A stretch of 64,000 nt of DNA. Origin: Octopus sinensis. Lineage: Eukaryota. Shown one piece after another: positions 5,614 through 62,451 of the stretch. Under the pieces are notes generated by a model, which searched no databases, was not told where the DNA came from, and was given only the letters and a program-made list of their open reading frames with translations. A program made the position numbers and the translations under genes. How positions within the stretch are numbered: position 1 is the first letter of the stretch; each line of letters opens with the position of its first letter. The stretch covers positions 118,730,001 through 118,794,000 of the forward strand of contig NC_043002.1 in assembly GCF_006345805.1 (NCBI RefSeq). The letters run 5' to 3'.

Positions 5614-6059
5614 CCCTTTCGTTACTGTATTTATTTTGAGATGTTCTGTGTTTCTTTCAATTACTTTAACCCTTTAGCATTTAAACCGGCCATATCCGGC
5701 CAAAAGTATTCTGCCTGTTTTATGTTCAAACTGGCCAGATCTGGTCTCTCACACCAACCCTACAATATTGTTTTAAAAATTAACAGCTACCTCATCAAAT
5801 TCTCATAGCTACAAGATAATGCATGATTAGTTCAAAACAATGTAGATAAAAAAGCATTAATTTTGGCAGAATAATGCGAACACTAAAGGGTTAAATATAG
5901 CAAAGAATTTAGTAAAATAACTTAGTTATCATTCAGCTTGTATTAGGATCATAAATTGTGACTAAGGTTTGGTGGAAGATTTTAATTGAAACCTTAAGCA
6001 AACGAGACATTTGTGCAACAGAGCCAGAGCCGGTTTCAGCCGGGTTGGTCACGAAAGGG
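5614..6059. mobile_element. piggyBac-type MITE F containing nested MITE E
   Basis: TTAA|CCCTTTCGTTAC ... CACGAAAGGG|TTAA; interrupted at an internal TTAA by E. Confidence 0.9.
5670..5890. mobile_element. piggyBac-type MITE family E
   Basis: TTAA|CCCTTTAG ... CTAAAGGG|TTAA, with TTAA duplicated (5666-5669 and 5891-5894). Confidence 0.9.
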
Positions 6060-7959: not shown

Positions 7960-8146
7960 CCCTTTAGCATTTAAACCGACCATATCCGGCCAAAAGTATT
8001 CTACCTGCTTTATGTTAAAACTGGCCAGATCTGGTCTCTCACACCAACCCTACAATATTGTTTGAAAAATTAACAACTACCTCATCAAAATCTCATATCT
8101 ACAAGATAATGCCTGATTAGTTCAAAACAATGCGAACACTAAAGAG
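7960..8146. mobile_element. MITE family E (internal deletion)
   Basis: TTAA|CCCTTTAG ... CTAAAGAG|TTAA. Confidence 0.85.
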
Positions 8147-8426
8147 TTAAACGTAGAAATGTTGAAGGTAAATGAATGCAAGTTGTATAAATTGATCAAA
8201 TATGTCAGTGTCATTAAAATTGTTACATTACATGCCAAATGACTTCCACATGGAAAAAAAATTAGTAAATTAGACATCATTGTAAAAATAAAACTGTTGG
8301 GAAGTAGAAGTTAATGAAATTTAATATCTTGACAAAATTCAAAATGAGAAGATAATTTTCTTTTTTGCCCTAATGTTAGTTCTAAAAACAAGGTACTCCA
8401 CTTTCTCCCTATCTCAACTGTTTTAG

Positions 8427-8646
8427 CCCTTTAGTGTTCAGATTATTCTGTCAAATGTGATATTTGTTTATTTATATTGTTTTGAATTAATCATGCATTA
8501 TCTTGTAATTTAGAGATTTCAGTGATGAGATTTTTTAGTTTTAGAATGACATGGAAGGGCTGAGGTGAGAGACAAGATCTGGTCAGTTTCAATATAAAAG
8601 AGGTTAAATATTTTGGCCGGATATGGCCGGTTTGAATGCTAAAGGG
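8427..8646. mobile_element. MITE family E (older subtype, opposite orientation)
   Basis: CCCTTTAG ... CTAAAGGG|TTAA; reverse-complement similarity to the 5670 copy. Confidence 0.8.
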
Positions 8647-10498: not shown

Positions 10499-10890
10499 TA
10501 CTCTTTTACTTGTTTCAGTCATTTGACTGCAGCCATGCTGGAGCACCGCCTTTAGTCGAGCAAATCGACCCCGGGACTTATTCTTTGTAAGCCCAGTACT
10601 TATTCTATCGGTCTCTTTTGCCGAACCGCTAAGTGACGGGGACGTAAACACACTAGCATTGGTTGTCAAGCAATGCTAGGGGGACAAACACAGACACACA
10701 AACACACACACATATATATATATACATATATACGACGGGCTTCTTTCAGTTTCCGTCTACCAAATCCACTCACAAGGCTTTGGTCGGCCCTAGGCTATAG
10801 CAGAAGACACTTGCCCAAGGTGCTATGCAGTGCGACTGAACCCGGAACCATGTGGTTCGTAAGCAAGCTACTTACCACACAGCCACTCCT
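10499..10890 (-). mobile_element. SINE family A
   Basis: Reverse complement of the family A consensus seen in the window. Confidence 0.9.
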
Positions 10891-10957
10891 AGTCATTATT
10901 AAGTTGTTGCTTGGAACATAAATTAAGTAGAAATTTTTATTGAAGGTTTTCATTTAA

Positions 10958-11565
10958 CCTTGTAGCATTTCAACCAGCCGTATCCAGCCCAAATGTTTTA
11001 CCTGTTTTTCATTCAAACTGGATAGATCTGACCTCTCACACCTACCTTACAATGTTGTTCTAAAAAAGAAACAATCACATCAGTAGGTGCAGGAGTGGCT
11101 GTGTGGTAAGTAGCCTGTCTACCAACCACATGGTTGTGGGTTCAGTCCCACTGCGTAGCACCTTGGGCAAGTGTCTTCTACTATAGCCTCGGGCCGACCA
11201 AAGCCTTGTGAGTAGATTTGGTAGACAGAAACTGAAAGAAGCCCGTCGTATATATGTGTATATATATGTATGTGTGTGTTTGTCCCTCTAGCATTGGTTG
11301 ACAACCGATGCTGGTGTGTTTACGTCCCCGTCACTTAGCGGTTCAGCAAAAGAGACCGATAGAATAAGTACTGGGCTTACAAAAGAATAAGTTCCAGGGT
11401 CGAGTTGCTCGATTAAAGGTGGTGCCCCAGCATGGCCGCAGTCAAATGACTGAAACAAGTAAAAGAGAGTGAAATCTTGAAGCTAGGAAGTAATGCATGA
11501 TTAATTCAATACAATGTGAATAAATAAGTATTACATTTGACAAAGTAATCGTAGACACTAAAAGG
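10958..11565. mobile_element. MITE E interrupted by SINE A (11085-11470, +)
   Basis: E halves with TTAA ends flank a full SINE A. Confidence 0.8.
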
Positions 11566-12215
11566 TTAATTCACTTTAAAGCAGGAAGTTTGTATCATAT
11601 AAACCAGAGTTGCGGGGGGGGGGGGGGCGTTGATATCAAATGGATTAAATACACTTGTTTCAAGTGTGCTGTTTTAGTGGTTTGTTCACCTTTGTATATC
11701 TTTTAAAATTTATATCATCCAGGTCAAAGTCTTGATTGAACATGGCTATGACCAAAGGCATTTCAGCCAGGACTATTTTTCAAGCATTGTATATTTAGGA
11801 CTACATCTTTCAATGTTTCTTCCCTAATATGAAGATAATAAGGTGTGATATGAGGGAGATTTAGCTACGATCTCTAAGAAGTAGACTCGCACATTGGCTC
11901 AAAATACCCTTTATGTGTATTGCAAATAACTTAGTAGTTCAATAAACAGACCTCTATCAGGTTCAGACTGAAATAAATACCATGACCAACGTGATCAGTT
12001 AAACTCTTGAAGGTGATGCCCCAGCTTGGCCAGTCTTATTAATGACATCAGTAAAAGAATAACTGTATAACCCATGTGCTGGCAATATGGCATATTTGTG
12101 AAGACTTGTGGAACTGAGTGAAATTGTAGTCATGGCCGATGCCAGTGACACCTAACTGGCACCCATGTGGGTGGCACGTAAAAAGCACCATCTGAGCATG
12201 GCTGATGCCAGTACC

Positions 12216-12447
12216 TATTTCTTTATTACCCACAAGGGGCTAAACATAGAGGGTACATACAAGGACAGACATAGGTATTAAGTCGATTACATCGACCCCC
12301 AGTGCGAAACTGGTACTTATTTAATCGACCCCGAAAGGATGAAAGGCAAAGTCGACCTCGGCGGAATTTGAACTCAGAACATAACAGCAGACGAAATACG
12401 GCTACGCATTTCACCCGGCGTGCTAACGTTTCTGCCAGCTCACCACC
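12216..12447 (-). mobile_element. tRNA-derived SINE family B inside a family D copy
   Basis: Reverse complement of GGCGGCAAGCTGGCAGAAACG ... GAGTTCAAATTCC ... AAAGAAATA; D sequence on both sides. Confidence 0.85.
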
Positions 12448-13726
12448 AACATGGGAAGCAGGCATTAAATGGTGATGATGATGATTATCATCAGTTCTGT
12501 TATATATCTATATGTTATACTTGTTATATATTATAATATTATGAAGGAGATGACAGAGGACTGAGATATGTGGTGCATTGCTGAACTAAAGATCTGCACA
12601 CCACAGCAAAACTGCAATCCTAAAACCAAGGTACAATGTAAAAACCATTGGTGCTGGTGTCATGTAGAAAGTACCGGTGCTGATGTCACATGGAAAACAG
12701 CCAGTACACTGTAACAAGGTTGACATTAGGAAGGGCATCCAGCTGTAGAAACCAAGCCAAAACAGAATGTGGAACCTGGTGTAGCGCCCCAGCCTTGCCA
12801 GTTACTGTCAAGCAGTCCTACTCATACCAGAATGGAAAATGGATGTCAAATGTGATGATGATGATGATGATAATGAGGCAATAATTTTGTTATATAAATT
12901 ATAATTAATACTCTTCTAGCAACAATAAACTCGCTCTTTTTTTTTTCTTTTTTTGGGAGGGGTTACTTTAGCATGGCTACAGCCCACTGCATAAAAAAAT
13001 AACAGCTAATGTAATCTAGTTTTATATTCCTTCAAAATAAATTATTCACATGTCATACATATATAAAAAGATCATAAAAAGAACTTATAAGAGAGTCTCA
13101 GTCATGTTGATTAAAAATGATATTCACTGTAATATTTGCAAACATTGATATATATTACATAAAATATATTTCATGTAATACACACAGGTTATATATCTTA
13201 ACATATAGTAACCCAGCTTTTGGAACCCTCTTTCCAAAATTAGAAGAGAGAGATATTTGATATAATGACCAATCTTTCTTGGCTTTCGTTATTCCAAAAT
13301 AGAAAGGTCACTTTAATTAGTGCAGTGACATTTCAGGCTAATCATAGTTATTTATATATCCAGAAATGGATGTTGATATAGAAGCAACACTTTATACTCA
13401 GTAATACTAAGTTTCATACAGAAAAAGACCTCGTTGAACAGAGAATCTCACAAGTGCAACAGGGGAGCCCTTATTTGGTCACTGAAACCGTTAAAAATAA
13501 CCAAATTACATTGCATCAGATTACATTCAACCATCCTGAATAAGAAAAGAACACATTAGATGATGAAATGCTAAATAACCCTAGAAACATACAATGCACA
13601 CAGCTTGATAAGTCTCCTTGACTAGAGCTGATTTTGAGCTTAACATTGTCCTAAGGCAAACCTGAATATGTATTTATGAAATAAATCACATTTTTAAAGG
13701 GAGGAGAGTTATAATTTTATACAAAA

Positions 13727-14704: not shown

Positions 14705-14883
14705 GGCACGTAAAAAGCACCCACTACACTCACGGAGTGGTTGTCGTTAGGAAGAGCATCCAGCCGTAGAAACACTGCCAGATCAGACTGGGCCTGGTGC
14801 AGCCTTCTGGCTTCCCAGACCCCAGTTGAACCGTCCAACCCATGCTAGCGTGGAGAACGGACGCTAAATGATGATGATGATGT
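14705..14883 (+). mobile_element. Family D (tail only)
   Basis: Common tail plus (GAT)n. Confidence 0.85.
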
Positions 14884-15860
14884 AGACTTGCAGCATGGTG
14901 ATGTAAACACAAGCTACAGTCAGTACATTCTGGATAGTTGAGTATTGTGGATAGTCACTGAGGCATGCTTTTGAGGTACAAGTGGGAATGTTTGACTGAT
15001 TACTGACTCATGTTATCACAGATCAATCTGTGATATGTGTAACATGTTTCACAATTCAGAGTAATATGTTACCTTGAATCAGTAATAAATGAATCCATAA
15101 ATAAGGATTTATGTGCTCTATGTAATACTACTGTAGTTTTTGGATGATGAAACATCAGAAGCAATGAAACCCACCACTTTATACTTAATTAGCCATAAAG
15201 TTTTAGAATTAGAGCAAAAAAATATGTTAAAATTATTAGTCCTTCCCAAAAGCATTAGCATTAATTGAGGACAAAGCTTTAATATAAATAATAAAGATTC
15301 CATTTGTTATTTGGCAACTAAAATGACGAAATATTATTTCAAACGGTGAAACAGACAAAAGCAAATATCTTTAGGTGTGTTTTGTAGTTGCTCATTTATT
15401 TATTATTTTTTTTCCAGTTAGTTAACACTGACCTACAGAGACAATAAACCAGTTTTTCTCTCAGTATATGTACACTAACACACATTGCACTTCACATAGT
15501 TATATGGTATTGTGAATCAGGGTTAATCTCAGACCAGGCAAACCACCTAGGACACTCTAATCCCCCCTCCCGCTCCATCCTTGGAATGCAATGTGTATTT
15601 TTTTAAGACAGTAGAATATAATATAAGTGAGATTTGGTGGTTGTTTCCAATACAAACTTCCTGCTTTAAGTATTTATTATAACAGGATTTGGTATCTATT
15701 TGTTAACCACAGAACAGCATTTTATGTGAAGGTTTTCTGCTACCACATACCTCACACTCAGCCAAGATAGTGCTACTAAACCTTCATCTGAAATCTTGAC
15801 CTTTGTGTAAATCTGGATTTTAAGAAAATGAAACTTTTATACAAAAATGCTTACACATAA

Positions 15861-16206
15861 TTTGTTATATTTCAGAATGGTCATTTTGCCAGTTTAGCCA
15901 ATAAAAACACACGCACTATATATTTGGTGTTACTTTGCTTCAGTGCTATTTATTTTTTACATTAATCTTAATCTTATTTCGGCCAGAGTTCTTTCGTCAC
16001 ACTCCTGTGACCGCATCAGTGGTCCTTTCTGAAATAAGATTAAGATTAATGTAAAAAATAAATAACACTGAAGCAAAATAACACCAAATATATAGCGCGT
16101 GTGTTTTTATTGGCTAAACTGGCAAAATGACCATTCTGAAATATAACAATATCTGTTTCAACACACGTCTTCACATCAAGAATCTTGCATGACAAATATT
16201 TAAACG
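15861..16206 (-). mobile_element. Fold-back Penelope-like retro-insertion with hammerhead core (no ORF)
   Basis: 119-bp inverted arms (15862-15980 and 16031-16149, 3 mismatches); 13-bp direct repeat TGCTTACACATAA at 15848-15860 and 16207-16219; hammerhead motif in the spacer. Confidence 0.7.
15981..16025 (-). ncRNA. Minimal type I hammerhead ribozyme (variant core)
   Basis: Minus strand reads GGACCA-CTGATGC-G-GTCACA(GGAG)TGTGAC-GAAA-GAACTC-TGGCC: stem I, CUGAnG core with C at the A9 position, 6-bp stem II, GAAA, minimal stem III and a CUC triplet. Confidence 0.65.
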
Positions 16207-16447
16207 TGCTTACACATAAAGTTTCCATTTAAATCCAGGCATTGCCATAAGAGAATCATCTCTTCTTGACACAAATCAAGATTTTTATGACAAGTGTGGA
16301 AGTGAGAAGTTGAGACTTCTTTCTCCTAAAGTCATTGGCACAAATGAATTTATCCCAATTGGAAATTAGAACCATGGCACAGAATATACATGAACACACA
16401 AAACGTATACCATGCAGGGTACTTTTGTTAAGTGTCCCTTGGTGCTT

Positions 16448-16820
16448 ATCATCATCGTTTAACGTCCGTTTTCCGCGCTAGCACGAGTTGGACGGTCCGA
16501 CCAGGGTCTGGGAAGCCAGAAGGCTGCACCAGGCTCCAGTCTGATCTGGCAGAGTTTCTACAGCTGGGTGCCCTTCCTAACGCCAACCACTCTGCGAGTG
16601 TAGTAGGTGCTTTTTACATGCCACCTGCACATGTGCCAGGGGAGTCCAGCATCGACCACGATCGGTTGGTGCTTTTAACATGCCACAGGCACAGAAGCCA
16701 GCCAAGGTGGCGCTGGCATCGGCCACGTTCGGATGGTGCTTTTTATGTGCCACTGGCACTGGAGCCAATCGAGGCGGCGCTGGCATCGGCCACATTTGGA
16801 TGGTGCTTTTTATGTGCCAC
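16448..16820 (-). mobile_element. Family D with tandem units
   Basis: (ATC)n, the common tail and repeated units. Confidence 0.8.
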
Positions 16821-16869
16821 TTAAAATAAATACATTCATCAATGTGTAGAAAAGTAATAAATGATTTAA

Positions 16870-17280
16870 CCCTTTCGTATTCAGATTTCTTTGTCAAATG
16901 TTTGCTTATTTATTTACATTGATTTGAATTTCTCATGCATTATCTTACAGCTTCAAGATTTCAATGGTATGTTTTTATAATTCTAGAATGATATATTAGT
17001 ATAGGTCTAAGAGGTTGGATTTGGCCAGTTTTAACATAAAACATGTAGAATATTTGGGCCAGATTAAATGCTAAACCGGCCATATCCGGCCTAAATATTT
17101 TTACTGTTCTATGTTCAAACTAGCTAGATGCAGCCTTCCACACCTACGCTACAATGTCCTTCTATAAATAAGCAATCATATCATGAAAATCTCAAAGCTA
17201 CAAGGTAAATGCACAGTTAATTCAGAGCAATGTAAATAAATAAGCATTACATTTGACAGAATAATCTGAATGCTAAAGGG
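16870..17280. mobile_element. Composite of two head-to-head fused MITE E copies
   Basis: Bounded by TTAA|CCCTTT and AAAGGG|TTAA; the two halves are diverged reverse complements joined near 17060-17075. Confidence 0.7.
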
Positions 17281-17874
17281 TTAATGGCAATTCCCTGCTA
17301 GTAAACTGTGGCCCAATTATCATTCGAATTTTACTAATGTCTTTGGAGAAAGCATGAACATCACATGGCATTGTGTGCCTGAGGCAGAAATCTTAAAAAA
17401 CCAAAATGAAAAGAGAAACTATAGAAAACTGTCAACATTCCAAAGTTGAACAATTTTAAACATTGTCTACTCGAATAAATAATGAAAAATAATAAAATTG
17501 AACCACTTAAACCTATAACAGATTAAAAGGGGGATGTAACAAGTGCAAAGTAAAGTTTAATTGAAGGTTCCTATTTCTTGAAACAATAATTAGATAACCC
17601 GTTAAAGCTGGAAACAATTAACAAAACATTAATTAAGGAATTAACTGAAGAGATGGCATGAGAGTTTCTGACACCAATGATGTTAATAGTAAGAGAAAGA
17701 AAACAATGCCATTCTTGGCAGGTGGCATCATTATAGGTTTATTGTTGATGTTCAGATCCAGGTTCTGCTCTACACAAAAACACTGCAGTCAGAAACAACC
17801 CACCTATTACTGCAGACAGCGTGTCTTACATTATCCAATATCTAATCCATGCCAGTGTGATAAAATAGACATGT

Positions 17875-18282
17875 AGGCGCAGGAGTGGCTGTGTGGTAAA
17901 TAGCTTGCTTACCAATCACATGGTTCCGGGTTCAGTCCCACTGCGTGGCACCTTGGACAAGTGCCTTCTACTATAGCTTCGGGCCGACCAAAGCCTTGTG
18001 AGTGGATTTGGTAGACGGAAACTGAAAGAAGCCTGTCGTATATATGTATATATATATATATATATGTATGTGTTTGTGTGTCTGTGTTTGTCCCCCTAGC
18101 ATTGCTTGACAACCAATGCTGGTGTGTTTACGTACTTGTCACTTAGCGGTTCGGCAAAAGAGACCGATAGAATAAGTACTGGGCTTACAAAGAATAAGTC
18201 CCGGGGTCAATTTGCTCAACTAAAGGCGGTGCTCAAGCATGGCCGCAGTCAAATGACTGAAAGAAGTAAAAGAGTAAAAGAG
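17875..18282 (+). mobile_element. SINE family A
   Basis: Full length. Confidence 0.9.
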
Positions 18283-18714
18283 ATATGAGCAGTTACTTTG
18301 TAGCAAAGCCCTTTTCTTTTTGTAAAATGAAAGTTATAGTGAGTTAGCTTATTTTGTAATTCTACTGATTGTGAATGACAAGCAAAGCTGACCCTAAGAA
18401 GATAGAAAGTGAAACAAAATATTATTAGTATTATAAACATAGCTGTTTATTACTCATATAAACTTGAGTATTCTTGATTATTTCATAATTGTTTGCTGAG
18501 CACAGATACAGAACTTGCTGCATCTCCCTATTCAACTTTTAATCAATTAGGAATTCAGAGTTGTTTTTCTTGTCTTTCTTAACAAAAATTATCACTAATG
18601 TCAATGTCCCTTTCTTTTCATTACAAGCAGACTTTTAATTGATTCAACTTCTAAGTTTTAAGCAGGATGGCTCCCACTTCAGCATACAAACACTGTCAAT
18701 ACCGATTCACATAC

Positions 18715-18736
18715 CTAGTTACATCCATACACACTG
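18715..18736 (-). CDS. Candidate 22-nt microexon of an unknown minus-strand gene
   Basis: Long pyrimidine tract plus TAG acceptor and GTATGT donor; no homology evidence. Confidence 0.25.
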
Positions 18737-19046
18737 CTAGAAATAAATAAATAAATAAAACATTCACTGAAGCACAATTACTCAAACACAACCACCAAAT
18801 CGACAAATGAATTAATATCTCACAACACTTCAGTAATGAGAATAATTACTTTAACATTAAAGGATATAATTAAGATTTGCTAAGCACAGTAGGAAAGGAA
18901 AGTGAGCAATCATATTTAGGAGTGGTTGACTCATGCCATCATGTACACATAGCAAACCATATTCAGAGAGAAAACAGTCATCATGAGCAACAAAATGTAT
19001 TTCATCAACTTTGTCATCCTACCTACCATTGTTAATGTACACTTAC

Positions 19047-19066
19047 CTTGATTCCATCTTGGGGTC
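19047..19066 (-). CDS. Candidate 20-nt microexon
   Basis: GTGTAG acceptor and GTAAGT donor; no homology evidence. Confidence 0.25.
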
Positions 19067-19087
19067 CTACACCAAATATTAATTATA

Positions 19088-19520
19088 ATCATCGTTTAAC
19101 GTCCGTTCTCCATGCTAGCATGGGTTGGACGGTTCGACCGGGGATCTGGGAAGCCAGAAGGCTGCACCAGGCTCCAGTCTTATCTGGCAATGTTTCTACA
19201 GCTGGATGCCCTTCCTAACGCCAGCCACTCCGTGAGTGTAGTGGGTGCTTTTTACATGCCACTGGCACTGGTGCCAGGCGAGGCTGGCATCGGCCACGGT
19301 CGGATTGGTGCATTTTACGTGCCACCTGCACTGGTGCCAGGCGAGGCTGGCATCGGCCACAGTCGGATTGGTGCATTTTACGTGCCACCTGCACTGGTGC
19401 CAGGCGAGGCTGGCATTGGCCACGGTCAGATTGGTGCATTTTACGTGCCACCGACACGGAAGCCAGTCGAGTCGGCGCTGGCATCGGCCACGATTCGGAT
19501 AGTGCTTTTTACGTATCTCC
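19088..19520 (-). mobile_element. Family D with near-identical 63-bp units
   Basis: Unit starts at 19308, 19371 and 19434. Confidence 0.85.
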
Positions 19521-19704
19521 AGTCCAGGGGTCCTGGCATCTGCCGGGTGCCAGTCATAGGATTGGTTCAATTTCGAATTAATTATAATCATTAGTCTATA
19601 CAGTTATTCTTCCTATTACAATCAATTACCCACCACTTGAGCCATTGAAAGAGCCTCACCATGGTCACTTGACTTGCTAGAAATTGCAACCAAATCTCCA
19701 TTAA

Positions 19705-19925
19705 CCCTTTTGATACCAACCTGGCCAAAACCGCTTCTGGCTCTGTAGTACAAATGTCTTACTTTCATAAGTATTGAATTAGAATCTTCCACCAAACCTT
19801 AGTCACAATTTATGTTCCCAACACTAGCTTAATGATAACTAAGTTCTTTACTAAATTCCTTGTTATAATTAAAATTAATTGAATGAAACACAGAGCATCT
19901 CAAAATAAATACGGCAACGAAAGGG
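19705..19925. mobile_element. MITE family F
   Basis: TTAA on both sides, CCC/GGG termini. Confidence 0.85.
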
Positions 19926-21529
19926 TTAAACCTCACCAAACCATCTTAAAAAAGAACACTGGATAATGTAACACTGGGTGTTCTATGCTTAAAGAATAAA
20001 AATAGAAAGCTACAACTGGAATACTCTTGACCATAAATTATTTTTCTTGTTTAGCCTAATGTCAGCTTTTTGGATCAAGAGCAACATGGGGTTAACCCTT
20101 TGCCTGTCAAAAGCATTCTCACAAGTTTGTCCTAAACATTTATACTTGTTTTCAGCTTTTTAGTTAGCCCTTGTTTCATACATTTTGAGTAATATAAAGT
20201 TTTCCTTTCATAAATCACAAGATACTTTGGTGGTTGAAAAAAAGCTAAGAATATGTATCATATATGATGCACAGATGTCAGGGAAATATATGCCTTGTGT
20301 ATGAGACACACGGGACAGAAAAAAACTTCAACCCTTTAAGAGTAATACTAAATAGGGTAGTAAGTTTTACAGAAATAGTGGAAAACCAGGCTAAATGCAG
20401 TACACTATTTAAGGCTCTAACTATGCTTTCTTCCCCTAGAGGCTCAGTAAAGTACTGGCAAACATTGGGATCAGTTATATCAACTGTACTCCTTCTCTAA
20501 AATATTCTTGTGTCCAGATGAAAAGAAAATCAATAGTGACACTAAATGTTCTTCAAATCAAATATTAAATGACAGAATGACAGATCAGACTCAATTGTAC
20601 AGACCTATCTATGGTCAAATACTTTTCTCTACTATTTTGTATTCTATTAAAAAAGTGCACATAAAACTACAATATTCAAATATGTCCTTCCTATTTTAAG
20701 ATATTAAGGTGTTATTTGAGAGAGATTTGGTGGTTGTTTCTAGCAGGTAACATGATCATGTAAGAGCAATGATTCACAAACAGATTACTGATACTTTAAA
20801 GTTTTACAACTGTTTGAAAAACCAATTATGACTAAACTTTAAGTCATATCAGAACAAGGGAAATCATAGTCGTGGTTGATGCTGGTAACATGTAAAAAGC
20901 AATCACTATACTCTTGGAGTGACTGGCATTAGGAAAAGCATCCAGCCATAAAAAAACCATACCAAATCAGATTGGAACCTGGTGCAACTCCCCGACTTAC
21001 CAGTTCTCCGTCAAACCATCCAACCCATGCCAGCATGGAAAACAGATGTTAAATGCACTTGTTAACAGGCTAAAATATATTCTTTCCAATTCATTGGTTT
21101 ACTTCATGCACGATTGACACTAAAATAGTTTTATATGCGCTACATGGAAAAACCTTTAGGAATCACTACTACAGAAGAGGATCTCTTGTTGGTACAACAC
21201 CATACTAAATTTATTAAAAGTGTAGAAAATAGCTAGCTATAATGCATAAATGAGTAAGCAGCCTATCTTGGATGCACATCTCTGCATCCTACTAAAATCC
21301 TTACAACACATTTCCCTTTTTGTATGGAACAACATAATTAACAAGTTAATGCTGAAGCCATTGCCAACTATGAAACAAAACAAGTCTATCTCCAAAGGGA
21401 ATAAGGATTTCTGGTCATGTAATACTACCATAATATTTAGAGAAATTTATTCCTTTAGGTTTGTTTTCTTTCATATTGAAATAGATGGTAGGGAGATTCA
21501 GACTTTTTATATGCATCCCCACCAGCATA

Positions 21530-21539
21530 TCATATATAC

Positions 21540-21570
<31 letters not shown>

Positions 21571-21589
21571 TATATATATATATATATAG

Positions 21590-21663
<74 letters not shown>

Positions 21664-21685
21664 TATATATATATATATATATATA
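21530..21685. repeat. Compound (TA)n/(GA)n microsatellite
   Basis: Direct reading. Confidence 0.95.
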
Positions 21686-22850
21686 CAAGCAAGCTTACAT
21701 ACAGAAGTTTCCATGAAGATATATGCAAACTTCTTCAGGGGAGAAAAAAAAAAGAGGGTGTGAATGTATGCATCCTCAATTTGGGGAAGAGGATTTCACT
21801 GACTGCAAAAACCATTCTAAATTTTTTTTTTGTTTTTTTTTTTTTGTTATGGGAAAGAGTATTTTTCCCTTTGCTTCAACCTACTTTTTTTTTTAAGCAG
21901 CAACTAGGGAACAGTAGTAGGATAGATAGGTCAAGAAGCCAGCTACCCAGCCCTGTTTCAAAGAATTTCTGAGTCATCATTTGGCATGATCTAGATAGAG
22001 ATGAGAAATTTAACTCCTTCAGCTTTGCAACAAGAGAAGAAATACAACTATAAATGTGTATACAAGTTAGAAATTCAAACTTATTCTGGAATAAAATAAA
22101 CATATAAGATCAAAGCTGTCTCCTCAGAGAACACAACAGAAACCAACAAGTCTAGGTTTTATAACTTTCCCGATTCCTGTTATCTAGGGAGTTTTATTTA
22201 AAACCTTTTTATGAAACCATTTTAGGTAAAATATACAGAACTTGTTTGATATCAGGGAGACAAAGAAAAGTAAAACCCAAAAAAAAAAAAAGGAGGAAAC
22301 TGAAATGAGTCATACAACACTGAGGAAAAAGAAAAATAAGTGTATCAAAATATAGAGAAAATTTCAGAAATTTTCATCAGACCACTGAAGCTACGAGAGG
22401 AAGTGCAATTAAGAGTTTCTGAGTGTGTACATGATTCAGCAAAGATGTCTTGATGTTTTTATCTTAGTTAGTACAGTAGGGAAGAGTTAGAGATACAATA
22501 AACATTTTAGAAAATGTAGTTATCAATGATACTTTTAAGACCCACCAAAAAGCAAGATGTAGGCTTAATGGGGGAGAGAGCCTGCATTGCTCCATCTGTT
22601 AGAAATAGCAACCAAATCCCCTTCACATCACATCCTCTGTATTAAATAATCCTTTCTACAATAGGCACAAGGCCTGAAATTTTGGAGAGTGGGGGTTGCC
22701 AATTGCATCAACCCCAGTGCTCAACCGATATTTATGGAAAAAATTCCACTAAGCATTGTGTCCAGCATGCTAAAGATTCTGCCAGCTTGCTGCCTTCTGT
22801 ATTTTAAATAATCCAATGTAATATAGTCACTGATGTACAAAAATATGTGG

Positions 22851-23235
22851 TGGAAGCACTCCGTCGGTTACGACAACGAGGGTTCCGGTTGATCCGAATC
22901 AACGGAACAGCCTGCTTGTGAAATTAACGTGTAAGTGGCTGAGCACTCCACAGACACATGTACCCTTAACGTAGTTCTCGGGGATATTCAGCGTGACACA
23001 GTGTGACAAGGCCGGCCCTTTGAAATACAGGTACAACAGAAACAGGAAGTAAGAGTGAGAGAAAGTTGTGGTGAAAGAGTACAGCAGGGATCACCACCAT
23101 CCCCTGCCGGAGCCTCGTGGAGCTTTTTAGGTGTTTTCGCTCAATAAACACTCACAACGCCTGGTCTGGGAATCGAAACCGTGATCCTATGACCGCGAGT
23201 CCGCTGCCCTAACCACTGGGCCATTGCGCCTCCAC
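22851..23235 (-). mobile_element. tRNA-derived SINE family C (Arg-like head)
   Basis: Head GGAGGCGCAATGGCCCAGTGGTTAGGGCAGCGGACTCGCGGTC ... TTTCGATTCCC; flanked by a 10-bp repeat ACAAAAATAT. Confidence 0.9.
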
Positions 23236-23773
23236 GCACAAAAATATAGTGTAGTTAAGGCAGGAAAGACTTTGATCATTGCCCTCCACTGTAGTTGAAT
23301 GAGCGCAAGGAGTCATTCAAGCAGCAATGAGATCAGAAAATGTGGAATAACATCACCACCAGAGTACATCATATAGCAGCATGCTGGCTCAGGGGACAGC
23401 CTCCTCCTCCTTCTCCAGTCACCAGCTCAGGATTTTAATTTACTTACTAGTGACACTGATATCATCAGAGAAAAATATAAGTGTCTCACTTTCAGTAAAC
23501 CTCTTATGAAATCAACATTACACATTTAGTGTACAACCAGTAAATTAATGCAGGAGACAAATCATCATCATCATTCTCATCATTCAACATCTATTTTCTA
23601 TGCCTGCATGAACATTTTAGGTCATATGATTTAAAACTTTCTTTGTCCCTTTCTTTGTAAATTTTATTCCCCTTCCAGGACTTCGATTAACCACTGAAAG
23701 ATTTACAATTAGAAAAGTTATAAATAGTAACCATTATAAAATTTGTTACAATTCTGAAAGATTTTTAACATCT

Positions 23774-23863
23774 TGGCACCTTGGGCAAGTGTCTTCTACT
23801 ATAGCCTCAGGCTGACCAAAGCCTTGTGAGTGGATTTGGTAGACGAAAACTGAAAGAAGCCCG

Positions 23864-23912
<49 letters not shown>

Positions 23913-24131
23913 TGTGTGTGTTTGTGTGTCTGTGTTTATCCCCCTAGCATTGCTTGATAATCAATGCTGGTGTGTTTATGTCCCCATTACTTAGCAGTTC
24001 GGCAAAAAAGACCGATAGAATAAGCACTGGGCTTACAAAGAATAAGTCCCAGGGTCGAGTTGCTCGATTAAAGGCGGTGCTCCAGCATGGCCGCAGTCAA
24101 ATGACTGAAACAAATAAAAGAGTAAAAGAGT
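23774..24131 (+). mobile_element. SINE family A, 5'-truncated
   Basis: Begins at the CORE-like segment; long internal (TA)n. Confidence 0.85.
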
Positions 24132-24435
24132 ATCTATGGATTACAAATATCAGAAAAGGGAAACAGAGTCAAAGGCCGTCAGATTTCCATTTATGAAATT
24201 CAACCAAATAATTGTCTTCATCTTGGATTTCAAAATTCTCCAGAGAACTCTTTCTGTGAACATTATGGCTATTGATTGTATAACTACATTTTAACCCCAA
24301 GAATCATTTACCCTTGTTGACAAAGATGATCTTTAAAACATGATCTAGATAAAACATAATAACAAGTGAGCCTGCATGCAATCACTCAACATGCCAAAAG
24401 CAGCAATCAGATTCCCTCAAATCATACTGCCTTAA

Positions 24436-24641
24436 CCCTTTCATTACCAACCTGGCTGATTTAGTACAAATGTCTGGTTTTCAAAAGTTCTGAATTAAAA
24501 CCTTCCACCAAACCTTAGTCACAATTTATGTCCCTAACTCTAGCCTAATGATAACGATGTTATTTTACTTAATTCTTTGTTATATTTAACATAATTGGAA
24601 GAAACACTGAGCATCTCAAAATAAATTTAGTAACGAATGGG
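24436..24641. mobile_element. MITE family F
   Basis: TTAA flanks. Confidence 0.8.
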
Positions 24642-26239
24642 TTAAAGAAGGATACACTGGATTATAGTAGTCCCAGATATACAAAACAAGGAGGATGGTC
24701 AGGAATGTCTTTGATTATACATCTAAACAACATTTAGATATCCTCTCCAACCCATACACTACAAAAGAAAGTTAAACATTGCTTTATATTTACTTAGAAA
24801 CAAGAAAAGAGATTGAGTGCCATTAGTGCTTTTTGTACGGGTTATTACAAGAGAAAAGTTTACAGCAGAACCAAAACCATATGTAAACCATTATGTGCAA
24901 TATCTGAGGAGAATTCAGTAAAGTTAATTAGTCAGTCAAAATCCAAATAAAATGTCTAAATTTATATTGTTATCTATGTACTAAATATCATTTCTCTTCA
25001 AATTTGACATTAACTACCCAAAAGTTTAAAAGAACCAACCAAGTCGTCAGGTCACTGAGTAAACATTATCACAGAAAATATAAAGAGAAGCTGTAAAGCT
25101 GATATCTCCATTTAAGCCCATTAACAAGTACAAGGTTTTATGGTTCAGATGAAAAAGTTTCATAAACATATAAAGCAATTTCTAACAGTGGAGCACCGAT
25201 GAAACGAGAATATGTTAGATATTAGGTTTGCAAAATAAATCCCATGAATGATTTTTAACATAAATACAAGATCTTCAATTAAGCGTATGGAGTACAGTTA
25301 GATACATCACTTCACTGGTACTGGTGCTAGAAAGATGCAAAGTCAATATCAGAGGGAACTGCACTCAGAATATAAATAGAGTAGTAGTCTGACATTCCAC
25401 CAATTCTTTCAATCCATCATGAATGACAATATACAACATTTACAAATAATACGAAAGAGAATGGACATAGTTATAGGGTAGAAATAGTAGCAAACCATAA
25501 TGTCTAATAAATGTATATTAATAAATTACCCAAGATTTAGGCGAACTGAAATATTTCAAAGATCTCTAGGACAAAAATATATTATAGATCTCACGTTAAA
25601 CCCAACTTTTATATTCTATGCTAACATACTTTATAAAATTTGCATTTTTTAATATATGTTGTTTTACTCAAGTCAGCTCTAATCAACTAGATTGTAATCA
25701 AAAGTATTCCAGCTACAGCCATTCTGTCTTTCTTTTCAGACACAATGTCTCTAAATTGCTTTGCTTTTTTTTAAAAAGTGTTTTTTATCTATTCTACTTT
25801 CATACAAATTGCTATCATGGGTGTCCCAACATCCTCAATACTACCCTATACTCATTGCATGGCAATAAGGTCAGATTCCTTTATTAAAAGAAAAAGTGTA
25901 TCTATCAATTGTAGCAGTTTCAAATGTTACATATACATGTACAAGTGGAATCAGTCCCCTCTCAGTAACAGATCTTATATCCATCAGAAAGTAAAACCTT
26001 AAGATTAAGAAGCTAGGAGTCATTTTCATACAAAATATGTTGGACATGAAACTGCCAATTTTAAAGAGTTCAAATCTGATCTAAAAAAAAAACTTATCAG
26101 AATTTTATGAATTACTGTTTTTAAAAGTTAAAGTTTCAAACACTAGCTTTAATAAGCTAGCTTTTACGAAATCCTTCCAAATTTTTGAATGGTCTCAAAT
26201 TTTTGATATCAATTCCCAGAATAAATTTGACACCTTTTG

Positions 26240-27020
26240 ACACTTGGTCCCACATTAGTTTATACTGCCAATATATATTGATTTCTATTGTCCAACAACT
26301 GTATTTATTGAAAACCTCTCATAATATATTAAAAACAATGAATTAAAATATATCAACTTTTGAATTCATAATCATATATAAATACAGACCTGGTAAGAAA
26401 AGAAAAAAATGAAAAATGAAAACAACCAGCAATTTGGTATTTTTCTCAGAAATACAAACACCTACATGATGATGACAAATATGCATAATGCATACAAATC
26501 CACAACTGTTTCATTGAAAGAAACAGATGACTTGAAGCATCAACTTAGAGCAGACCGATGAAACATTTACTTCTTCCAATTTAATCATCATCCTCATCAT
26601 CATCATTGTCTAACGTCCACTTTCCATGCTGGCATGGATTGGACAGTTTGACTGAGGACTAGCAAGCCAGGAAGCTGCACCAGGATCCAATCTGATCTTG
26701 CAAGGTTTCTACAGCTGGATGCCCTTCCTAATGCCAACCACTCCAAGAGTGTAGTGGGTGCTTTTTACGTGCCACCAGCACAAAGACAACACTGGCATTG
26801 ACACTCAAATGTTGCTTTTTACATGCCACCAGCACAGGAGTTAGTCAGGCAGCACTGACATCAGCCACACTTGAACGGCGCTTTCTACGTGCCACCACCA
26901 CAGGAGCCAGTCGGGCAGCACTGGCATCGATCACACCTGTATATAATAAGTTTTATGAAATAAATAAAGACAAAAAAGGTACTGAAAGAGAATGCCAATC
27001 AAGTAGATAAATGGCAAAAT
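26240..27020. repeat. Old local duplication, copy 1 (blocks A-B-[family D 26586-26935]-C)
   Basis: The blocks recur at 29872-30370. Confidence 0.8.
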
Positions 27021-27043
27021 TAATTGAAAAATATATACAGTGT

Positions 27044-27427
27044 GGTTGTATACTGTCAATCTAACACGAACGTGACAGTAGGGGGTACACCACCACTGTT
27101 TAGCCCTAGGAAGCATCGACGACTCCTGATGGCTTTGACACATTTTTCCTGTGTCATTATATACCGACGAAGGACAATCATCCTGAAACACGTGTCCCTA
27201 GATGCAGCCCTGGGCGGCTGGGAGTGTTTGTCTCCCCTTCGTAAATGTATATAAGGACACAGGAAAAATGTGTCAAAGCCATCAGGAGGCGTCAATGCTT
27301 CCTAGGGCTAAACAGCGGTGGTGTACCCCCTACTGTCACGTTTGTGTTAGAATGACAGTATACAACCATTCTATTGCCCCACCACCGTACATGTCTCTAC
27401 GAGAGATTTAGAAATTTAGTATTTCTG
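27044..27427. mobile_element. Second fold-back Penelope-like retro-insertion with hammerhead core (no ORF)
   Basis: 122-bp inverted arms (27043-27164 and 27247-27368, about 6 mismatches); 13-bp direct repeat ATATATACAGTGT at 27031-27043 and 27428-27440. Confidence 0.7.
27164..27196 (+). ncRNA. Hammerhead ribozyme core (degenerate)
   Basis: CCGACGA-AGGA(CAATCA)TCCT-GAA-ACACGTGT-C: C at the U4 position, palindromic stem III and a GUC triplet; stem I is not formed by the adjacent flanks. Confidence 0.6.
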
Positions 27428-27992
27428 ATATATACAGTGTATTTCACTAAAAATGTCATCACAAAAGAGTTAAAAAGACCTGTGTAATTGTAAACTGAAT
27501 ATTTCCTCTTCCTATAAATAAAACATTTAAATTACACTTATACATGTTTCTATTGCATTAAAATATAAGTAATGGAAAGAAGACGTATTTCCTGACAATC
27601 ATATCAATTTATTATAAAGTCTCATCAAAGAATCTTGAGTTTAGTCACAAAGAAAGATGAGTGCTCCTCTTTAAAGTTTTATTGTATGATTAAGTACTTG
27701 AAATTACAAATTTGTAATGACTACTACACAAGTGAAACATATTTGACCACAAGAAGTTTATTACAATGTCTACGATGTAATGAGTAATTTTCTTGGCATA
27801 CTTTGCATGACCTTTAAAAGCTATCAAGTCTAATAACGGCTATTACCTATATGTAAATCTCTATTGTCAGTTGGTTAACCCTTTCCGTTTCATGGCCTCA
27901 ACAGCAACTACATTAAATTATTAACATTTCAAATCCAAGCATATAAAACAAAAGAGACTAAAACACTATATGGTATTAATGAAATTATAAAA

Positions 27993-28406
27993 GGCGGCAA
28001 GCTGGCAGAATTGTTAGCATGCCAGGCGAAATGCTTAGCGGTATTTCGCCTGTCGTTATGTTGGGAGTTCAAATTCCGCCGAGGTTGACTTTGCCTTTCA
28101 TCCTTTCGGGGTCGATTAATTAAGTACCAGTTACGCACTGGGGTCGATGTAATTGACTTAATACCTATGTCTGTCCTTGTTTGTCCCCTCTATGTTTAGC
28201 CCCTTGTGGGTAATAAAGAAATAGGTATTTCGTCTGCGTTACGTTGTGAGTTCAAATTCCGCCGAGGTTGACTTTGCCTTTCATCCTTTCGGGGTCGATT
28301 AATTAAGTACCAATTACGTACTGGGGGCGATGTAATCGACTTAATACCTATGTCTGTCCTTGTTTGTCCCCTCTGTGTTTAGCCCCTTGTGGGTAGTAAA
28401 GAAATA
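27993..28406 (+). mobile_element. SINE family B with tandem duplication of its 3' part
   Basis: Full copy 27993-28223 followed by partial copy 28224-28406; flanking repeat GGTATTAATGAAAT. Confidence 0.9.
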
Positions 28407-28782
28407 GGTATTAATGAAATGCAGAACAGAGGGCAGCTGACTGCTCCATGTCTGAAATGCACAAATAAATAATAAACGTAGGGTTCATGGAAAATTTATG
28501 TAACTAATTCATGTATTAACATGTAAATGTTATTTTGTTTTTGTTTTCTGAATGTTCCAGATTGAAAATTCCATTTTTGTTAGCACAACCAATTCAGCAA
28601 TTATATGAGCTATTAAAGGATCATCTATACAGCTGCTCAATCTGCTAGACATAGCAGCTCAAATCACAACCTACTATCTTGAAAAAAAAGTAAGGCTATG
28701 TTTAGGTAATATAGTCAAAAACACACAAAAAGACTGTCTTTGAACATGAGTCTACTCAATTAGAACTAACAAAATGAAAAAA

Positions 28783-29147
28783 TCAAAAATCAAAATCGAT
28801 CAACAAGAATGGAAATTGTCGCTGTGATATCAGTGCTGGTGGCACATAAGAGAACCATCTGAACGTGGCTGTTGCCAGTGCCGCCCTGACTGGCTTCCAT
28901 GCCTGTGGCACATAAAAAGCACCATCCGACTGTGGCCGTTTGCCAGACTTGTCTGGCACCTGTGCAGGTGGCACATAAAAAGCACCCACTACACTCATGG
29001 AGTGGTTGGCATTAGGAAGGGCATCCAGCCGTAGAAACATTGCCAGATCAGACTGGGCCTGGTGCAGCCTTCTGGCTTCCCAGACCCCAGTTGCACCATC
29101 CAACCCATGCTAGCATGGAAAGCGGACGCTAAACGATGATGATGATG
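28783..29147 (+). mobile_element. Family D, copy extending furthest 5'
   Basis: Its 5' part (AATGGAAATTGTCGCTGTGAT) matches the LINE 3' UTR upstream of the tandem unit. Confidence 0.85.
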
Positions 29148-41280: not shown

Positions 41281-41501
41281 CCCTTTAGCGTTTAAACCAG
41301 CCATATCCGGCCAAAAGTATTCTGCTTGTTTTATGTTCAAACTGGCCAGATCTGGTCTCTCACACCAACCCTACAATATTGTTTTAAAATTTAACAGCTA
41401 CCTCATCAAAATCTCACAGCTACAAGATAATGAATGATTAGTTCAAAACAATCTGGATAAAAAAGCATTAGTTTTGGCAGAATAATGCGATCACTAAAGG
41501 G
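41281..41501. mobile_element. MITE family E
   Basis: TTAA|CCCTTTAG ... CTAAAGGG|TTAA. Confidence 0.9.
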
Positions 41502-42779
41502 TTAAATAAACAGGCTCCGTTCACAGCCCAAGAGTTAAGCCCCTAAACAATAATAGATCATGACCATGTTAATGGTATCAGTTATCACATTGGATTCCTT
41601 TTCAGAGTGGTCAGAAATTATTTGTGTTCCTGATTGGAAGAAGTCAACTGAAAACAGGTGTTACAAAGTAAATTTTCATTCAGAAAGGTTTTGGTTTTAA
41701 ACAACACCCATGCATTTTCATAACAGTAGTCTATGTTGCATTTCCTTACAAAATGCCCCCTTATCACCTGCAATCAAATGGGACTGCAGAATGAATGGTT
41801 CAAACATTTAAAATGGGTTTAAGGGTGTTTTCACTTCAGGGCAAACAATCAATTACTGTTTAGTTATTATAAATAATAGTCCTCATGTTGACAGGTTAAA
41901 AAGTCATTCTGCTTAGAATAGGATCATGTCCTATTCCAAGGCATGAATCTTGCTTATGGCTTGGTCTATGGATGAGCAGATGTGCTGTTTATAAAGACAT
42001 AAAAAATAACGGTTCAGCAGCAGAAATTACTATCTTTGTAATGCAAGCTGGAAACAACAATGTTATGCTTACAAATGATGGGATTGGAACATTGACTGGA
42101 TAATGCTGATGAAATCAGAATAAAACTTGAACCTTGAAAAAAATGTGGAGGACGGTGATGGTGTACATTGTGAGGTAGTACATCTCTTATTTTGAGAAAA
42201 AACTTGTATTGATAATGTGGACAAGATTACACTTAATGTAAAAATTAAAAGTATTCAATCTACCCAGTGTTTTAAGCTTTTGTGTTTCAAGAGGTAAAGA
42301 TACTTGTGTTATATAGTGTTATTGTAGAAACAAGGGACTCATGAATAATCTACTCCTTATTATCTTTGTGTGTGTGTGCTCGTGTGCACATACACATGCG
42401 TTCTAGAAGTTTTAAGACTTTTTTAGTAGAAGCTGTTATAACTGGTCTAGATTATTATAATTTTAGTATGTCATTATTATACTTCTAAGAAGCTGGCCTG
42501 ACAACTTCTGTTATTCCAGATTGAAGGAGACAGTTGTAACACCACTTTAAACACAGTCTACTAAACACTGCTAGTCACAGCTGATTAGTCAGAGGAATGC
42601 AGTCAAGACATTGACAAACTGACTATGCAATAAAGTTTTGCGTTCAACTGAGCAAAAACACTACAGAAACTTTTGAGATGTTCCAGATTGCTTATGGATC
42701 AACGTTTTCTCTACTACAAGAGGTTCAAGGACAGTAGAGAGGAGGTGAGAGACAATGAGAAGTGTGGGAGGGAGAGGGA

Positions 42780-43415
42780 CATCAGATCATCAGAGCTGGT
42801 TGAGCATTTTGCAATTTACTGGATGAAGATTGTTGCATGTCTATAAAGACAATAAGCATACAGTTTGGAGCTGGTATAGCAACTGTACACAGAATCATTC
42901 ATGAAGATCTGAATATGTGCAAAGTTTGTTTCAATGAAGAGCATCCTGGTAACCTATTTCTTTATTACCCACAAGGGGCTAAACACAGAGGGGAGAAACA
43001 AGGACAGACATAGGTATTAAGTCGATTACATCAACTCCAGTGCGTAACTGGTACTTAATTTATCGACCCCGAAAGTATGAAAGGCAAAGTCGACCTCGAC
43101 GGAATTTGAACTCACAACGTAACGGCAGATGAAATACCGCTAGGCATTTGGACCGGCGTGTTAACGTTTCTGCCAGGTCACCGTCTTACTGGTAACCAGT
43201 TACTTGACTGAGATGGACATCAAAATTGTCCCTCAGCCATCCTACAGTCCAGACATGCGCCCCATGATTTCTGAAGGAAAACCTCAGGGAAAGCCATTTT
43301 GAAGATGAAGGAGGTTGTGACAAAGGTCCTGGACACCTTCAATATGGAAGACTTCCATGGAGCCTTCACAAAGTAGCTGGAGCACTACAAGAGCATTGAA
43401 GTGAGAGGACACTAC
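42780..43415 (+). pseudogene. Internally deleted mariner transposase remnant, interrupted by SINE B
   Basis: ATVHRIIHEDLNMCKVC followed by YLTEMDIKIVPQPSYSPDMRPHDF (YSPDLAP motif). Confidence 0.8.
42955..43185 (-). mobile_element. SINE family B
   Basis: 9-bp TSD CTGGTAACC at 42946-42954 and 43189-43197. Confidence 0.9.
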
Positions 43416-43815
43416 CACAGCCAGAGTGTGTGCCGCCTAGACCGACCCTTGAGTTTGCCGCCTACAGGCTGCCCACAAAAAATACATATTGCCTACAGCA
43501 GCCCCAAAAGTGGTACCACCCCCATAAAAATGCTGCCCGGGGTAGCCACACAGCCCCCCCCCCATTCTGGCTACGCTAGTGTTAGAGGATCCTTCTTAGG
43601 AGATTAGAGCTTTGTACAGCTTTGAAATTAATGTCTCCTCTCAAAAAGTCTCAAAATTTCTGGAATGCACATTGCGTGCGTGTGCTTGAGCGAATGCAGG
43701 CAGGCAGGCATGAACAGTTGAGACCATTTTAATATGTATTAATATTAATATATTATATAGTGTTATTGTAGAAACAAGGGACTCATGAATAATCTACTCT
43801 TTATTATCTTTGTGT

Positions 43816-44048
43816 GGCGGCAAGCTGGCAGAAACGTTAGCACGCCGGGCGAAATGCTTAGCCGTATTTCGTCTGCCGTTACGTTCTGAGTTCAAATTCC
43901 GCCGAGGTCGACTTTGCCCTTTCATCCTTTCGGGGTAGATAAATTAAGTACCAGTTACGCACTGGGGATCGATGTAATCGACTTAATCCGTGTGTCTGTC
44001 CTTGTTTGTCCCCTCTGTGTTTAGCCCCTTGTGGGTAGTGAAGAAATA
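43816..44048 (+). mobile_element. SINE family B with 5' captured segment
   Basis: 17-bp TSD at 43725-43741 and 44049-44065 encloses the SINE plus 74 extra bp. Confidence 0.9.
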
Positions 44049-61200: not shown

Positions 61201-61440
61201 GTCTTTGAGGTAGCCTGCAGAAGGGTATCATAAAAGTGGTTCTTCTGATCATTTGGTAGCCACGCATGTGGGGCGTAGGCAGAGATAATTGTAGCTGTGC
61301 TGTTCTGTAGGACTAGCCTGAGCTTAAGCACTCTATCACATACTCTGACAGCCTCTATGACCTTATCCACCCATTTCTCCGCAAGGATATGCCAACACCC
61401 CCTACCCCATCCATGTTACCTTGCCAGAAGACTTTATACC
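58243..61440 (-). mobile_element. RTE-clade LINE, 5'-truncated within the endonuclease and frameshifted
   Basis: APE endonuclease (ISAYAP, AGDFNGHVG, SQTDFIL, QHRLV; 60720-61370); RT (GKAPGPSG, NYRGIKLL, QFGF..KSTTDAIF, FVDLEKAF, QGSALSPLLF, LLYADDL; 59343-60406); C-terminus RRLRWYGHVLRM..RGRGRP (58667-58909); ~420-bp 3' UTR and (GAT)n tail. Confidence 0.95.
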
Positions 61441-62380: not shown

Positions 62381-62451
62381 TCTATATATATATATGCATA
62401 TATATGTTGCATACATGCACACACCCGACAAAAACACATGCACACATATGC

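Follow-up and report, generated by a model that had tools for sequence, protein, structure and literature searches.

Penelope-like elements and other related systems

The insertion architecture of Penelope-like elements (PLEs) is described in three reports: (i) Craig et al. 2021 (PMC8557442) document an inverted, 5'-truncated copy together with a 30-40-bp tail at one end, target-site duplications (TSDs) of variable length, and a (TA)n bias in the Naiads, which lack hammerheads, (ii) Arkhipova et al. 2013 (PMC3846280) describe rotifer insertions with inverted pseudo-long terminal repeats (pLTRs), one of which has a 31-bp tail, TSDs of 8-10 bp, palindromes at the inverted junctions, and foreign DNA mobilised in trans by pLTR sequences alone, and (iii) Frangieh et al. 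2024 (PMC11167929) demonstrate that purified PLE protein cleaves and extends both DNA strands and uses two adjacent internal start sites for reverse transcription, the spacing of which corresponds to the tail. In Octopus vulgaris, PLEs are a major order of transposable elements, with 31 recently active families (PMC13282606). Described here are two short fold-back insertions, e1 (15848-16219) and e2 (27031-27440), from a 64,000-nt stretch of the Octopus sinensis genome (assembly GCF_006345805.1, contig NC_043002.1, positions 118,730,001 to 118,794,000; hereafter the window). Their layout corresponds to the one that these three reports give for PLE insertions, and the blueprint is not new. e1 and e2 most likely represent ordinary cases of a known kind of insertion, and they reveal neither a new transposition mechanism nor a new ribozyme.

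The non-LTR (long terminal repeat) retrozymes of animals are short elements without an open reading frame (ORF) that are thought to depend on PLEs (Cervera and de la Peña 2020; Li et al. 2026, preprint). Retrozymes are arranged head-to-tail as tandem repeats, contain intact type I hammerheads and pass through circular RNA intermediates. They resemble e1 and e2 in being short and ORF-less, and e1 alone in the association with a hammerhead. By contrast, e1 and e2 are single head-to-head inverted units from which an intact ribozyme is absent, and neither site contains a tandem array.

Layout of the two insertions

e1 and e2 are genuine mobile-element insertions. Both follow the same succession of parts (Table 1): a 13-bp direct repeat, a left arm, a spacer, a right arm inverted relative to the left, an extension (or tail) at one end only, and the second copy of the direct repeat. 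This layout had been proposed in an earlier note made from the letters of the DNA alone and stands throughout, whereas the hammerhead cores that the note placed in the spacers largely do not. The direct repeats are perfect copies. The chance rate of a 13-mer repeat with this geometry is 1.3e-3 per site when estimated empirically in the window, which is repeat-rich and includes microsatellites, and about 1e-5 from base composition; thus, it is not credible that the repeats of e1 and e2 both arose by chance. The left arms abut the left TSD as claimed, with one additional T between them in e1 and a 1-nt overlap in e2, and the lengths first noticed for the inverted arms (119-122 nt) and the one-sided unique extensions (57-59 nt) are confirmed. 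The complete inserts measure 346-384 bp. No similarity between e1 and e2 is detected by BLAST, as had also been noticed, each is present in one copy within the window, and the ~11 kb that separates them is repeat-rich, unrelated DNA.

In each insertion, the right terminus, where the tail ends, lacks complementarity to the left one. T-rich runs follow each of the four inferred nick sites, with the nick immediately preceding TTTTTG, TTTTCA, AGTTTC and ATTTCA. The arm/tail boundaries, at which AUAUAACAA (e1) and GUAUACAACCA (e2) are followed by U, resemble each other weakly. The left arm of e1 is the 3' part of a copy in minus-strand sense (copy A), which is directed outward and has the outer end ...AUAUAACAA; the right arm belongs to a second copy (copy B). 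All three mismatches between the e1 arms are transitions. In the e2 spacer, an imperfect ACGAAGG/CCTTCGT pairing lengthens the stem and leaves ~58 nt unpaired. The minus strand of this spacer folds as a closed 4-way junction with three hairpins (-29.8 kcal/mol, z = -2.7), a folding reached by 1 of 200 shuffles, and the junction is recognised by neither ARAGORN nor Rfam. The folding energies of the e1 spacer and of the arm/tail junctions are no better than those of shuffled sequence.

The coding content of the insertions is small. ORFs within e1 and e2 span 25-86 aa, and none is the single ORF with reverse transcriptase (RT) and GIY-YIG domains of an autonomous PLE. A Pfam scan of three of these ORFs gives zero matches, and homologues of the 79-aa ORF of e2 are absent among the 5.8 billion proteins searched. 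Of 12 ORFs of the window that were looked up by exact sequence, none is on record. Two scans of metagenome, prokaryotic-genome and viral collections with arm and tail k-mers are empty; a 20-mer of the tail gives only chance matches in the same collections, with flanks that lack homology. The extensions of e1 and e2 match no tail of the long or short interspersed nuclear elements (LINEs, SINEs) of the window. An origin of e1 and e2 as tRNA-derived SINEs was considered and rejected on this basis and because ARAGORN finds no tRNA across the window.

Table 1. Parts of e1 and e2, and other repeat families of the window (positions are those of the window)
Feature	Position	Strand	Description
e1 left TSD	15848-15860	no strand	TGCTTACACATAA; exact 13-mer, found again at 16207-16219
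e1 left arm	15862-15980	minus	119 nt; 3 mismatches to the reverse complement of 16031-16149
e1 spacer	15981-16030	minus	50 nt; 5' continuation of copy A
e1 right arm (copy B)	16031-16149	plus-strand sense	119 nt
e1 one-sided extension (tail)	16150-16206	plus	57 nt; unique; extends copy B, between arm end and right TSD
e1 right TSD	16207-16219	no strand	perfect 13-bp match to 15848-15860
e2 left TSD	27031-27043	no strand	ATATATACAGTGT; last T doubles as first arm base
e2 left arm	27043-27164	minus	122 nt; 95% complementary to 27247-27368, 6 mismatches
e2 spacer	27165-27246	no strand	82 nt
e2 right arm (copy B)	27247-27368	plus-strand sense	122 nt
e2 tail	27369-27427	plus	59 nt; TTCTATTGCC...GTATTTCTG; conserved in the O. 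vulgaris copy
e2 right TSD	27428-27440	no strand	perfect 13-bp repeat
SINE-like family with 178-bp head, example copies	14705-14882, 16448-16824, 19082-19594, 28831-29147, 62855-63118
MITE-like family, relatives of 16866-17284	5694-5896, 7984-8622, 41305-41507, 11470-11576

A second copy of the e2 family in Octopus vulgaris

An ORF that spans one SINE of the window matches 'Hypothetical predicted protein [Octopus vulgaris]'. The same SINE recurs, at 83-94% identity, in the 20 kb of O. vulgaris DNA that surround the gene for this protein (OX597830.1:66197486-66217803; L003), which identifies the window as Octopus DNA. L003 also contains a second e2-family copy, with 91-92% identity, on its minus strand at about 12177-12457. 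This copy opens with TGGTTG[C/T]ATACTGTC, as does e2, and the left termini of the two agree within 0-6 nt; the outer end of the e2 left arm, TGGTTGTATACTGTC, is conserved. The tail shows 3 differences in 59 nt from the e2 extension and has an identical final base (...ATTTCTG). The L003 copy is embedded in a (TA)n tract, and its arms (~101 nt) are joined in a 7-nt loop, that of a hairpin belonging to the element itself (GACACAggaaaaaTGTGTC), while the 82-nt spacer of e2 is absent. Thus, the family has a constant extension, and its arm and spacer lengths vary. The 'fixed geometry' that the earlier note proposed is not supported by this comparison (~101-nt arms and a 7-nt centre vs. 122 nt and 82 nt), as only the extension and the outer termini are constant. 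Since one match occurs in the sole 20 kb of O. vulgaris DNA sampled, the e2 family is estimated at no less than some thousands of copies, a figure with a very wide error.

When the four arms (both arms of e2 and both of the L003 copy) are aligned in sense orientation, all differences between left and right arms are private to one locus, and there is no position at which the same left/right difference occurs in both. Three positions (one indel and an adjacent pair, GT vs. AC) differ between the loci and are identical in both arms of each locus. These patterns argue that the palindrome is rebuilt at each insertion and not inherited. It follows with moderate confidence that the arms of each insertion were probably copied, at insertion, from a single-armed template and not from a two-armed master. 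The proposal that such insertions form a class of palindromic retroelements loses its footing on the same patterns, as the palindrome is seemingly made anew each time.

A third fold-back is present in the same O. vulgaris locus (893-1625; arms of ~130 nt, a centre of ~480 nt, and no clear TSD). Its arm ends carry ATACAACCATTCT, the 13-mer that spans the arm/tail boundary of e2; the match may be due to chance, or the fold-back may be related to e2 and share its priming site. Homology of tails or arms among e1, e2 and this third fold-back was rejected, as local alignment finds a 13-nt motif as the only shared sequence.

The hammerhead question

A hammerhead core in each spacer was central to the earlier note, which regarded the insertions as ribozyme-bearing. 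The strict hammerhead descriptor contradicts this, as CUGANGA is absent from both strands of e1 and e2. Rfam detects no hammerhead or other ribozyme across the whole window at the gathering score, and no ribozyme is matched at E<=10 down to sub-windows of 96 nt or 171 nt. The sole Rfam matches on e1 and e2 are to plant and animal microRNA (miRNA) hairpin models, with the plant MIR models at E of 1e-10, and are due to the long stem.

e1 contains a near-miss on the minus strand (15983-16022): GGACCA-CUGAUG-C-G-GUCAC-AGGAGU-GUGAC-GAAA-GAAC-UC/UGGCC, where the slash marks the predicted cleavage site. The motif has a single core substitution, of the essential A9 to C, with all other parts present. 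Like the minimal hammerheads of PLEs (Cervera and de la Peña), the e1 motif has an extra nucleotide after position 9 and a G10.1-C11.1 pair, and its helix I is short and its helix III minimal; its loop 3, however, is non-palindromic. A relaxed minimal-hammerhead descriptor that tolerates one core mismatch has 2 matches in 128 kb (both strands of the window), compared to a mean of 0.3 in ten random sequences. As matches to this descriptor are so rare, the presence of the motif in a 50-nt spacer is unlikely to be due to chance. The motif lies on the predicted sense strand (outward-directed), about 123 nt from the terminus, with cleavage predicted between 15986 and 15985, 5 nt off the arm boundary. 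It is read here as a putative decayed or variant hammerhead relic. The other match to the relaxed descriptor, near window position 46869 on the minus strand, has a 4-bp helix II that includes a G-U pair and a 3-bp helix I; it is weak, lies at the edge of a SINE and is probably a chance match.

e2 has no match even to the relaxed one-mismatch descriptor. The CTGATG of e2 sits in the arms, outside the spacer, and the spacer holds just a CUGAAAC-ACGU-GUC fragment from which helix II is absent. The term 'ribozyme-bearing' is, thus, not apt for e2, which is without a hammerhead, or for e1, which has only a relic with a mutated core.

Comparison with PLEs and a proposed mechanism of insertion

e1 and e2 are probably two independent, fairly old insertions of unrelated families, made by the integration machinery of PLEs in the Octopus genome. 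Target-primed insertion of the retro type, as the earlier note had envisaged, is supported for both, and the link to Penelope-like elements, also raised there, is the best available explanation, as the geometry matches the published PLE footprint. We infer that the agent is a PLE enzyme rather than another reverse transcriptase. Features shared with PLEs (Penelope/Poseidon, Neptune and Naiad) include: (i) head-to-head inverted, 5'-truncated copies, (ii) an extension confined to one end, which is constant within the e2 family, (iii) a TSD, which in PLEs is variable in length, (iv) AT-rich or (TA)n targets, as at e1, e2 and the L003 copy, (v) a palindrome or hairpin at the inverted junction, as in the L003 copy, and (vi) in e1 only, a hammerhead-like motif upstream of the terminus, at about 123 nt compared to roughly 90 nt in an anole element. 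By contrast, e1 and e2 have neither an RT/GIY-YIG ORF nor a direct pair of pLTRs, and the TSD is 13 bp compared to 8-10 bp in the rotifer examples. The canonical PLE clades have a hammerhead in the pLTR and the Naiads do not; e1 has the near-miss (A9 to C) and e2 has none.

In the proposed mechanism, the GIY-YIG endonuclease would place one nick in each strand of an AT-rich target, with 13 bp between the nicks, and this stagger would give the 13-bp TSD. Each 3'-OH would then prime reverse transcription on the same element RNA to generate two outward-pointing copies, with priming at either of two defined internal start sites, ~58 nt apart. The spacing of the start sites would explain why the tail is at one end only, site 1 leading to the tail-less end and site 2 to the tailed end. 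Both cDNAs would end early, by 5' truncation or run-off, and would be joined head-to-head in the middle. The fold-back would thus be created afresh at each insertion, such that arm length and spacer would be accidents of the cDNA end points, while the two outer termini and the tail would be properties of the family. The source RNAs may stem either from autonomous PLEs in truncated form or from small dependent elements without an ORF. The loci described here show the anatomy and the TSDs of this scheme, together with its conserved termini and tail, its variable centre and its targets in AT or (TA)n; from the literature come the two start sites and the use of both strands for nicking and priming. 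In e1, the right copy starts 5 nt from the predicted cleavage site of the hammerhead-like motif and, as a single case, could represent run-off on a processed RNA.

Several points weigh against an assignment to PLEs. The hammerhead is absent from e2, and the hammerhead-like motif of e1 is substituted at the essential A9. The tails of 57-59 nt exceed the 30-40 nt published for PLEs. Homology to PLE RT, GIY-YIG or pLTR sequences is not seen in the window, in which no systematic scan for PLE domains was made. The window and the fetched loci yield no paralogous empty site to establish the 13-mers as target duplications; within this set, the flanks of e1 are unique, and the left flank of e2 has one paralogue, which stops ~20 nt before the insertion point. 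The sample is also small, with the e2 family known from two copies and the e1 family from one. Gene conversion between arms could mimic the locus-private pattern of differences, and a central deletion between two GACACA repeats could have turned a window-like fold-back into the L003 copy.

Alternative explanations

The latter deletion, between direct repeats of the two arms, would also suit a fold-back that itself transposes, i.e., an ORF-less, palindromic, ribozyme-bearing non-autonomous retroelement of fixed geometry that is copied from a fold-back master. Such a unit would account for the near equality of the unrelated e1 and e2 in arms (119 and 122 nt), tails (57 and 59 nt) and TSDs (13 and 13 bp), and it would suit the seeming abundance of the e2 family, a copy of which is found in the single 20-kb sample taken from O. 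vulgaris. It is considered unlikely, as the L003 copy has ~101-nt arms and a 7-nt centre, the two loci have no left/right arm difference in common while 3 sites are shared by the arms within a locus, and the hammerhead is missing from e2 and mutated in e1. In addition, long perfect hairpin RNAs are poor templates.

Twin priming by a LINE of the APE (apurinic/apyrimidinic endonuclease) type, in which the overhang of the top strand is primed at an internal position of the same RNA and the 5'-inverted 3' end of a SINE or LINE is left, carries a lower probability still. Variable TSDs of 7-20 bp and nicks beside T/A runs are typical of the target-primed reverse transcription of LINEs, a degenerate LINE with APE and RT domains is present in the window (59008-61415), and LINE-dependent SINEs are very abundant there. 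The 5' inversions of L1-type elements resemble e1 and e2 in that two primings on one RNA yield an inverted 5' segment inside one TSD; they differ in that, here, the segments overlap by about 100-120 nt, the priming positions are defined, and a poly(A) or microsatellite tail is absent. Inverted overlaps of ~120 nt are not the usual outcome of twin priming. Moreover, twin priming is expected to start at arbitrary internal positions, whereas the two e2-family insertions share their left (within 0-6 nt) and right termini, an argument drawn from these two copies only, and it is because of these shared termini that twin priming is disfavoured. The mismatch of both extensions with the LINE/SINE tails of the window points in the same direction. 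Least probable is that e1 and e2 are miniature inverted-repeat transposable elements (MITEs), i.e., derivatives of cut-and-paste DNA transposons with long inverted repeats. MITEs and the foldback elements of the Drosophila type do share long inverted arms, a short centre and flanking direct repeats with e1 and e2, and the window holds real MITE-like elements (e.g., the TTAA-flanked family of 16866-17284). The asymmetry of the termini disfavours a terminal inverted repeat (TIR) transposon: the right terminus is not the inverted left, and within the TSD there is the 57-59-nt extension, which is also present, conserved, in the second e2 copy. The centre is variable, the arms are seemingly regenerated with each insertion, and a 13-bp TSD is not known to fit any common eukaryotic TIR superfamily.

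Implications for repeat annotation

Insertion by the PLE machinery may have a wider extension in octopus, which is advanced here tentatively and with a probability well below that of the assignment of e1 and e2 themselves. Octopus genomes may possess short, ORF-less, PLE-dependent retroposons, in at least thousands of copies, in which the fold-back is rebuilt at each insertion from start sites ~58 nt apart (nearly twice the PLE tail) and, in the e2 type, the hammerhead is replaced by a 4-way junction. If so, these retroposons would be a new class of non-autonomous partners for a cephalopod PLE clade and a source of systematic false 'MITE' calls.

The value of e1 and e2, if read correctly, would be mainly practical, for annotation. 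Very short PLE-type insertions, made up of just a tail and two inverted terminal fragments, would resemble MITEs, hairpins or miRNA precursors and be misfiled by the repeat and non-coding RNA annotation of cephalopods, whose genomes are rich in PLEs. The mislabelling as MITEs of which the earlier note warned could indeed happen, as long arms, a short centre and direct repeats are what an annotation pipeline sees. Such mini-insertions would also be a compact natural record of the two priming sites and two nick sites of the PLE enzyme, and, tabulated across a whole genome, they would put the model of Frangieh et al. 2024 to the test in an invertebrate without biochemistry.

Genomic surroundings

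The window (37% G+C; CpG observed/expected of 0.51) is densely filled by two SINE-like families. One family, with at least 10 copies in the window (examples in Table 1), has a 178-bp head followed by tandem repeats of 62-67 bp. The terminal ~55 bp of this SINE match, at 84-89%, the end region of an RT-PHD ORF of a LINE on a contig of the European Nucleotide Archive (L002, 6174-6236), which suggests that the SINE tail is LINE-derived. The other family, of ~390-420 bp, includes an internal (AT)n/(AC)n microsatellite, has ends that resemble tRNA-derived octopus SINEs, and is found at 10501-11467, 63690-64000 and many more sites. The largest palindromes of the window are one head-to-head and one tail-to-tail pair of this SINE, i.e., adjacent insertions that are not of the e1/e2 type; the tail-to-tail pair meets in (TA)n, with its centre at 63876/63877, and is cut by the window end. 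Accordingly, the fold-backs at 10501-11467 and 63755-63998 were rejected as further examples of the e1/e2 blueprint, being neighbouring SINE copies in opposite orientations.

The fold-back at 16866-17284 was also rejected as an e1/e2-type insertion. It belongs to a MITE-like family of ~420 bp with the inverted ends TTAACCCTTTCG.../...CTAAAGGGTTAA and TTAA at both extremes, is piggyBac-like, and serves as an example of a true TIR element in the octopus genome. Nested inverted repeats are found at 42955-44048 (42955-43032 / 43971-44048 and 43080-43183 / 43818-43921) and enclose short ORFs that appear transposase-like by eye and are without a match in Pfam. The LINE at 59008-61415, on the minus strand, is a degenerate, frameshifted non-LTR retrotransposon with an Exo_endo_phos_2 endonuclease, an RVT_1 domain split in two and, weakly matched, a PHD finger at the C-terminus. 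The best protein relatives of this LINE are 44-59% identical, one of them from Argonauta hians, and the two loci fetched via such relatives (L001 and L002) are not octopus DNA. Another SINE-like sequence, which contains ...TTCGGGGTCGATTAATTAAGTACC..., forms two tandem 183-bp units of 94% identity at 28040-28412, and related ORF-like stretches lie near 12229-12507 and 62177-62485.

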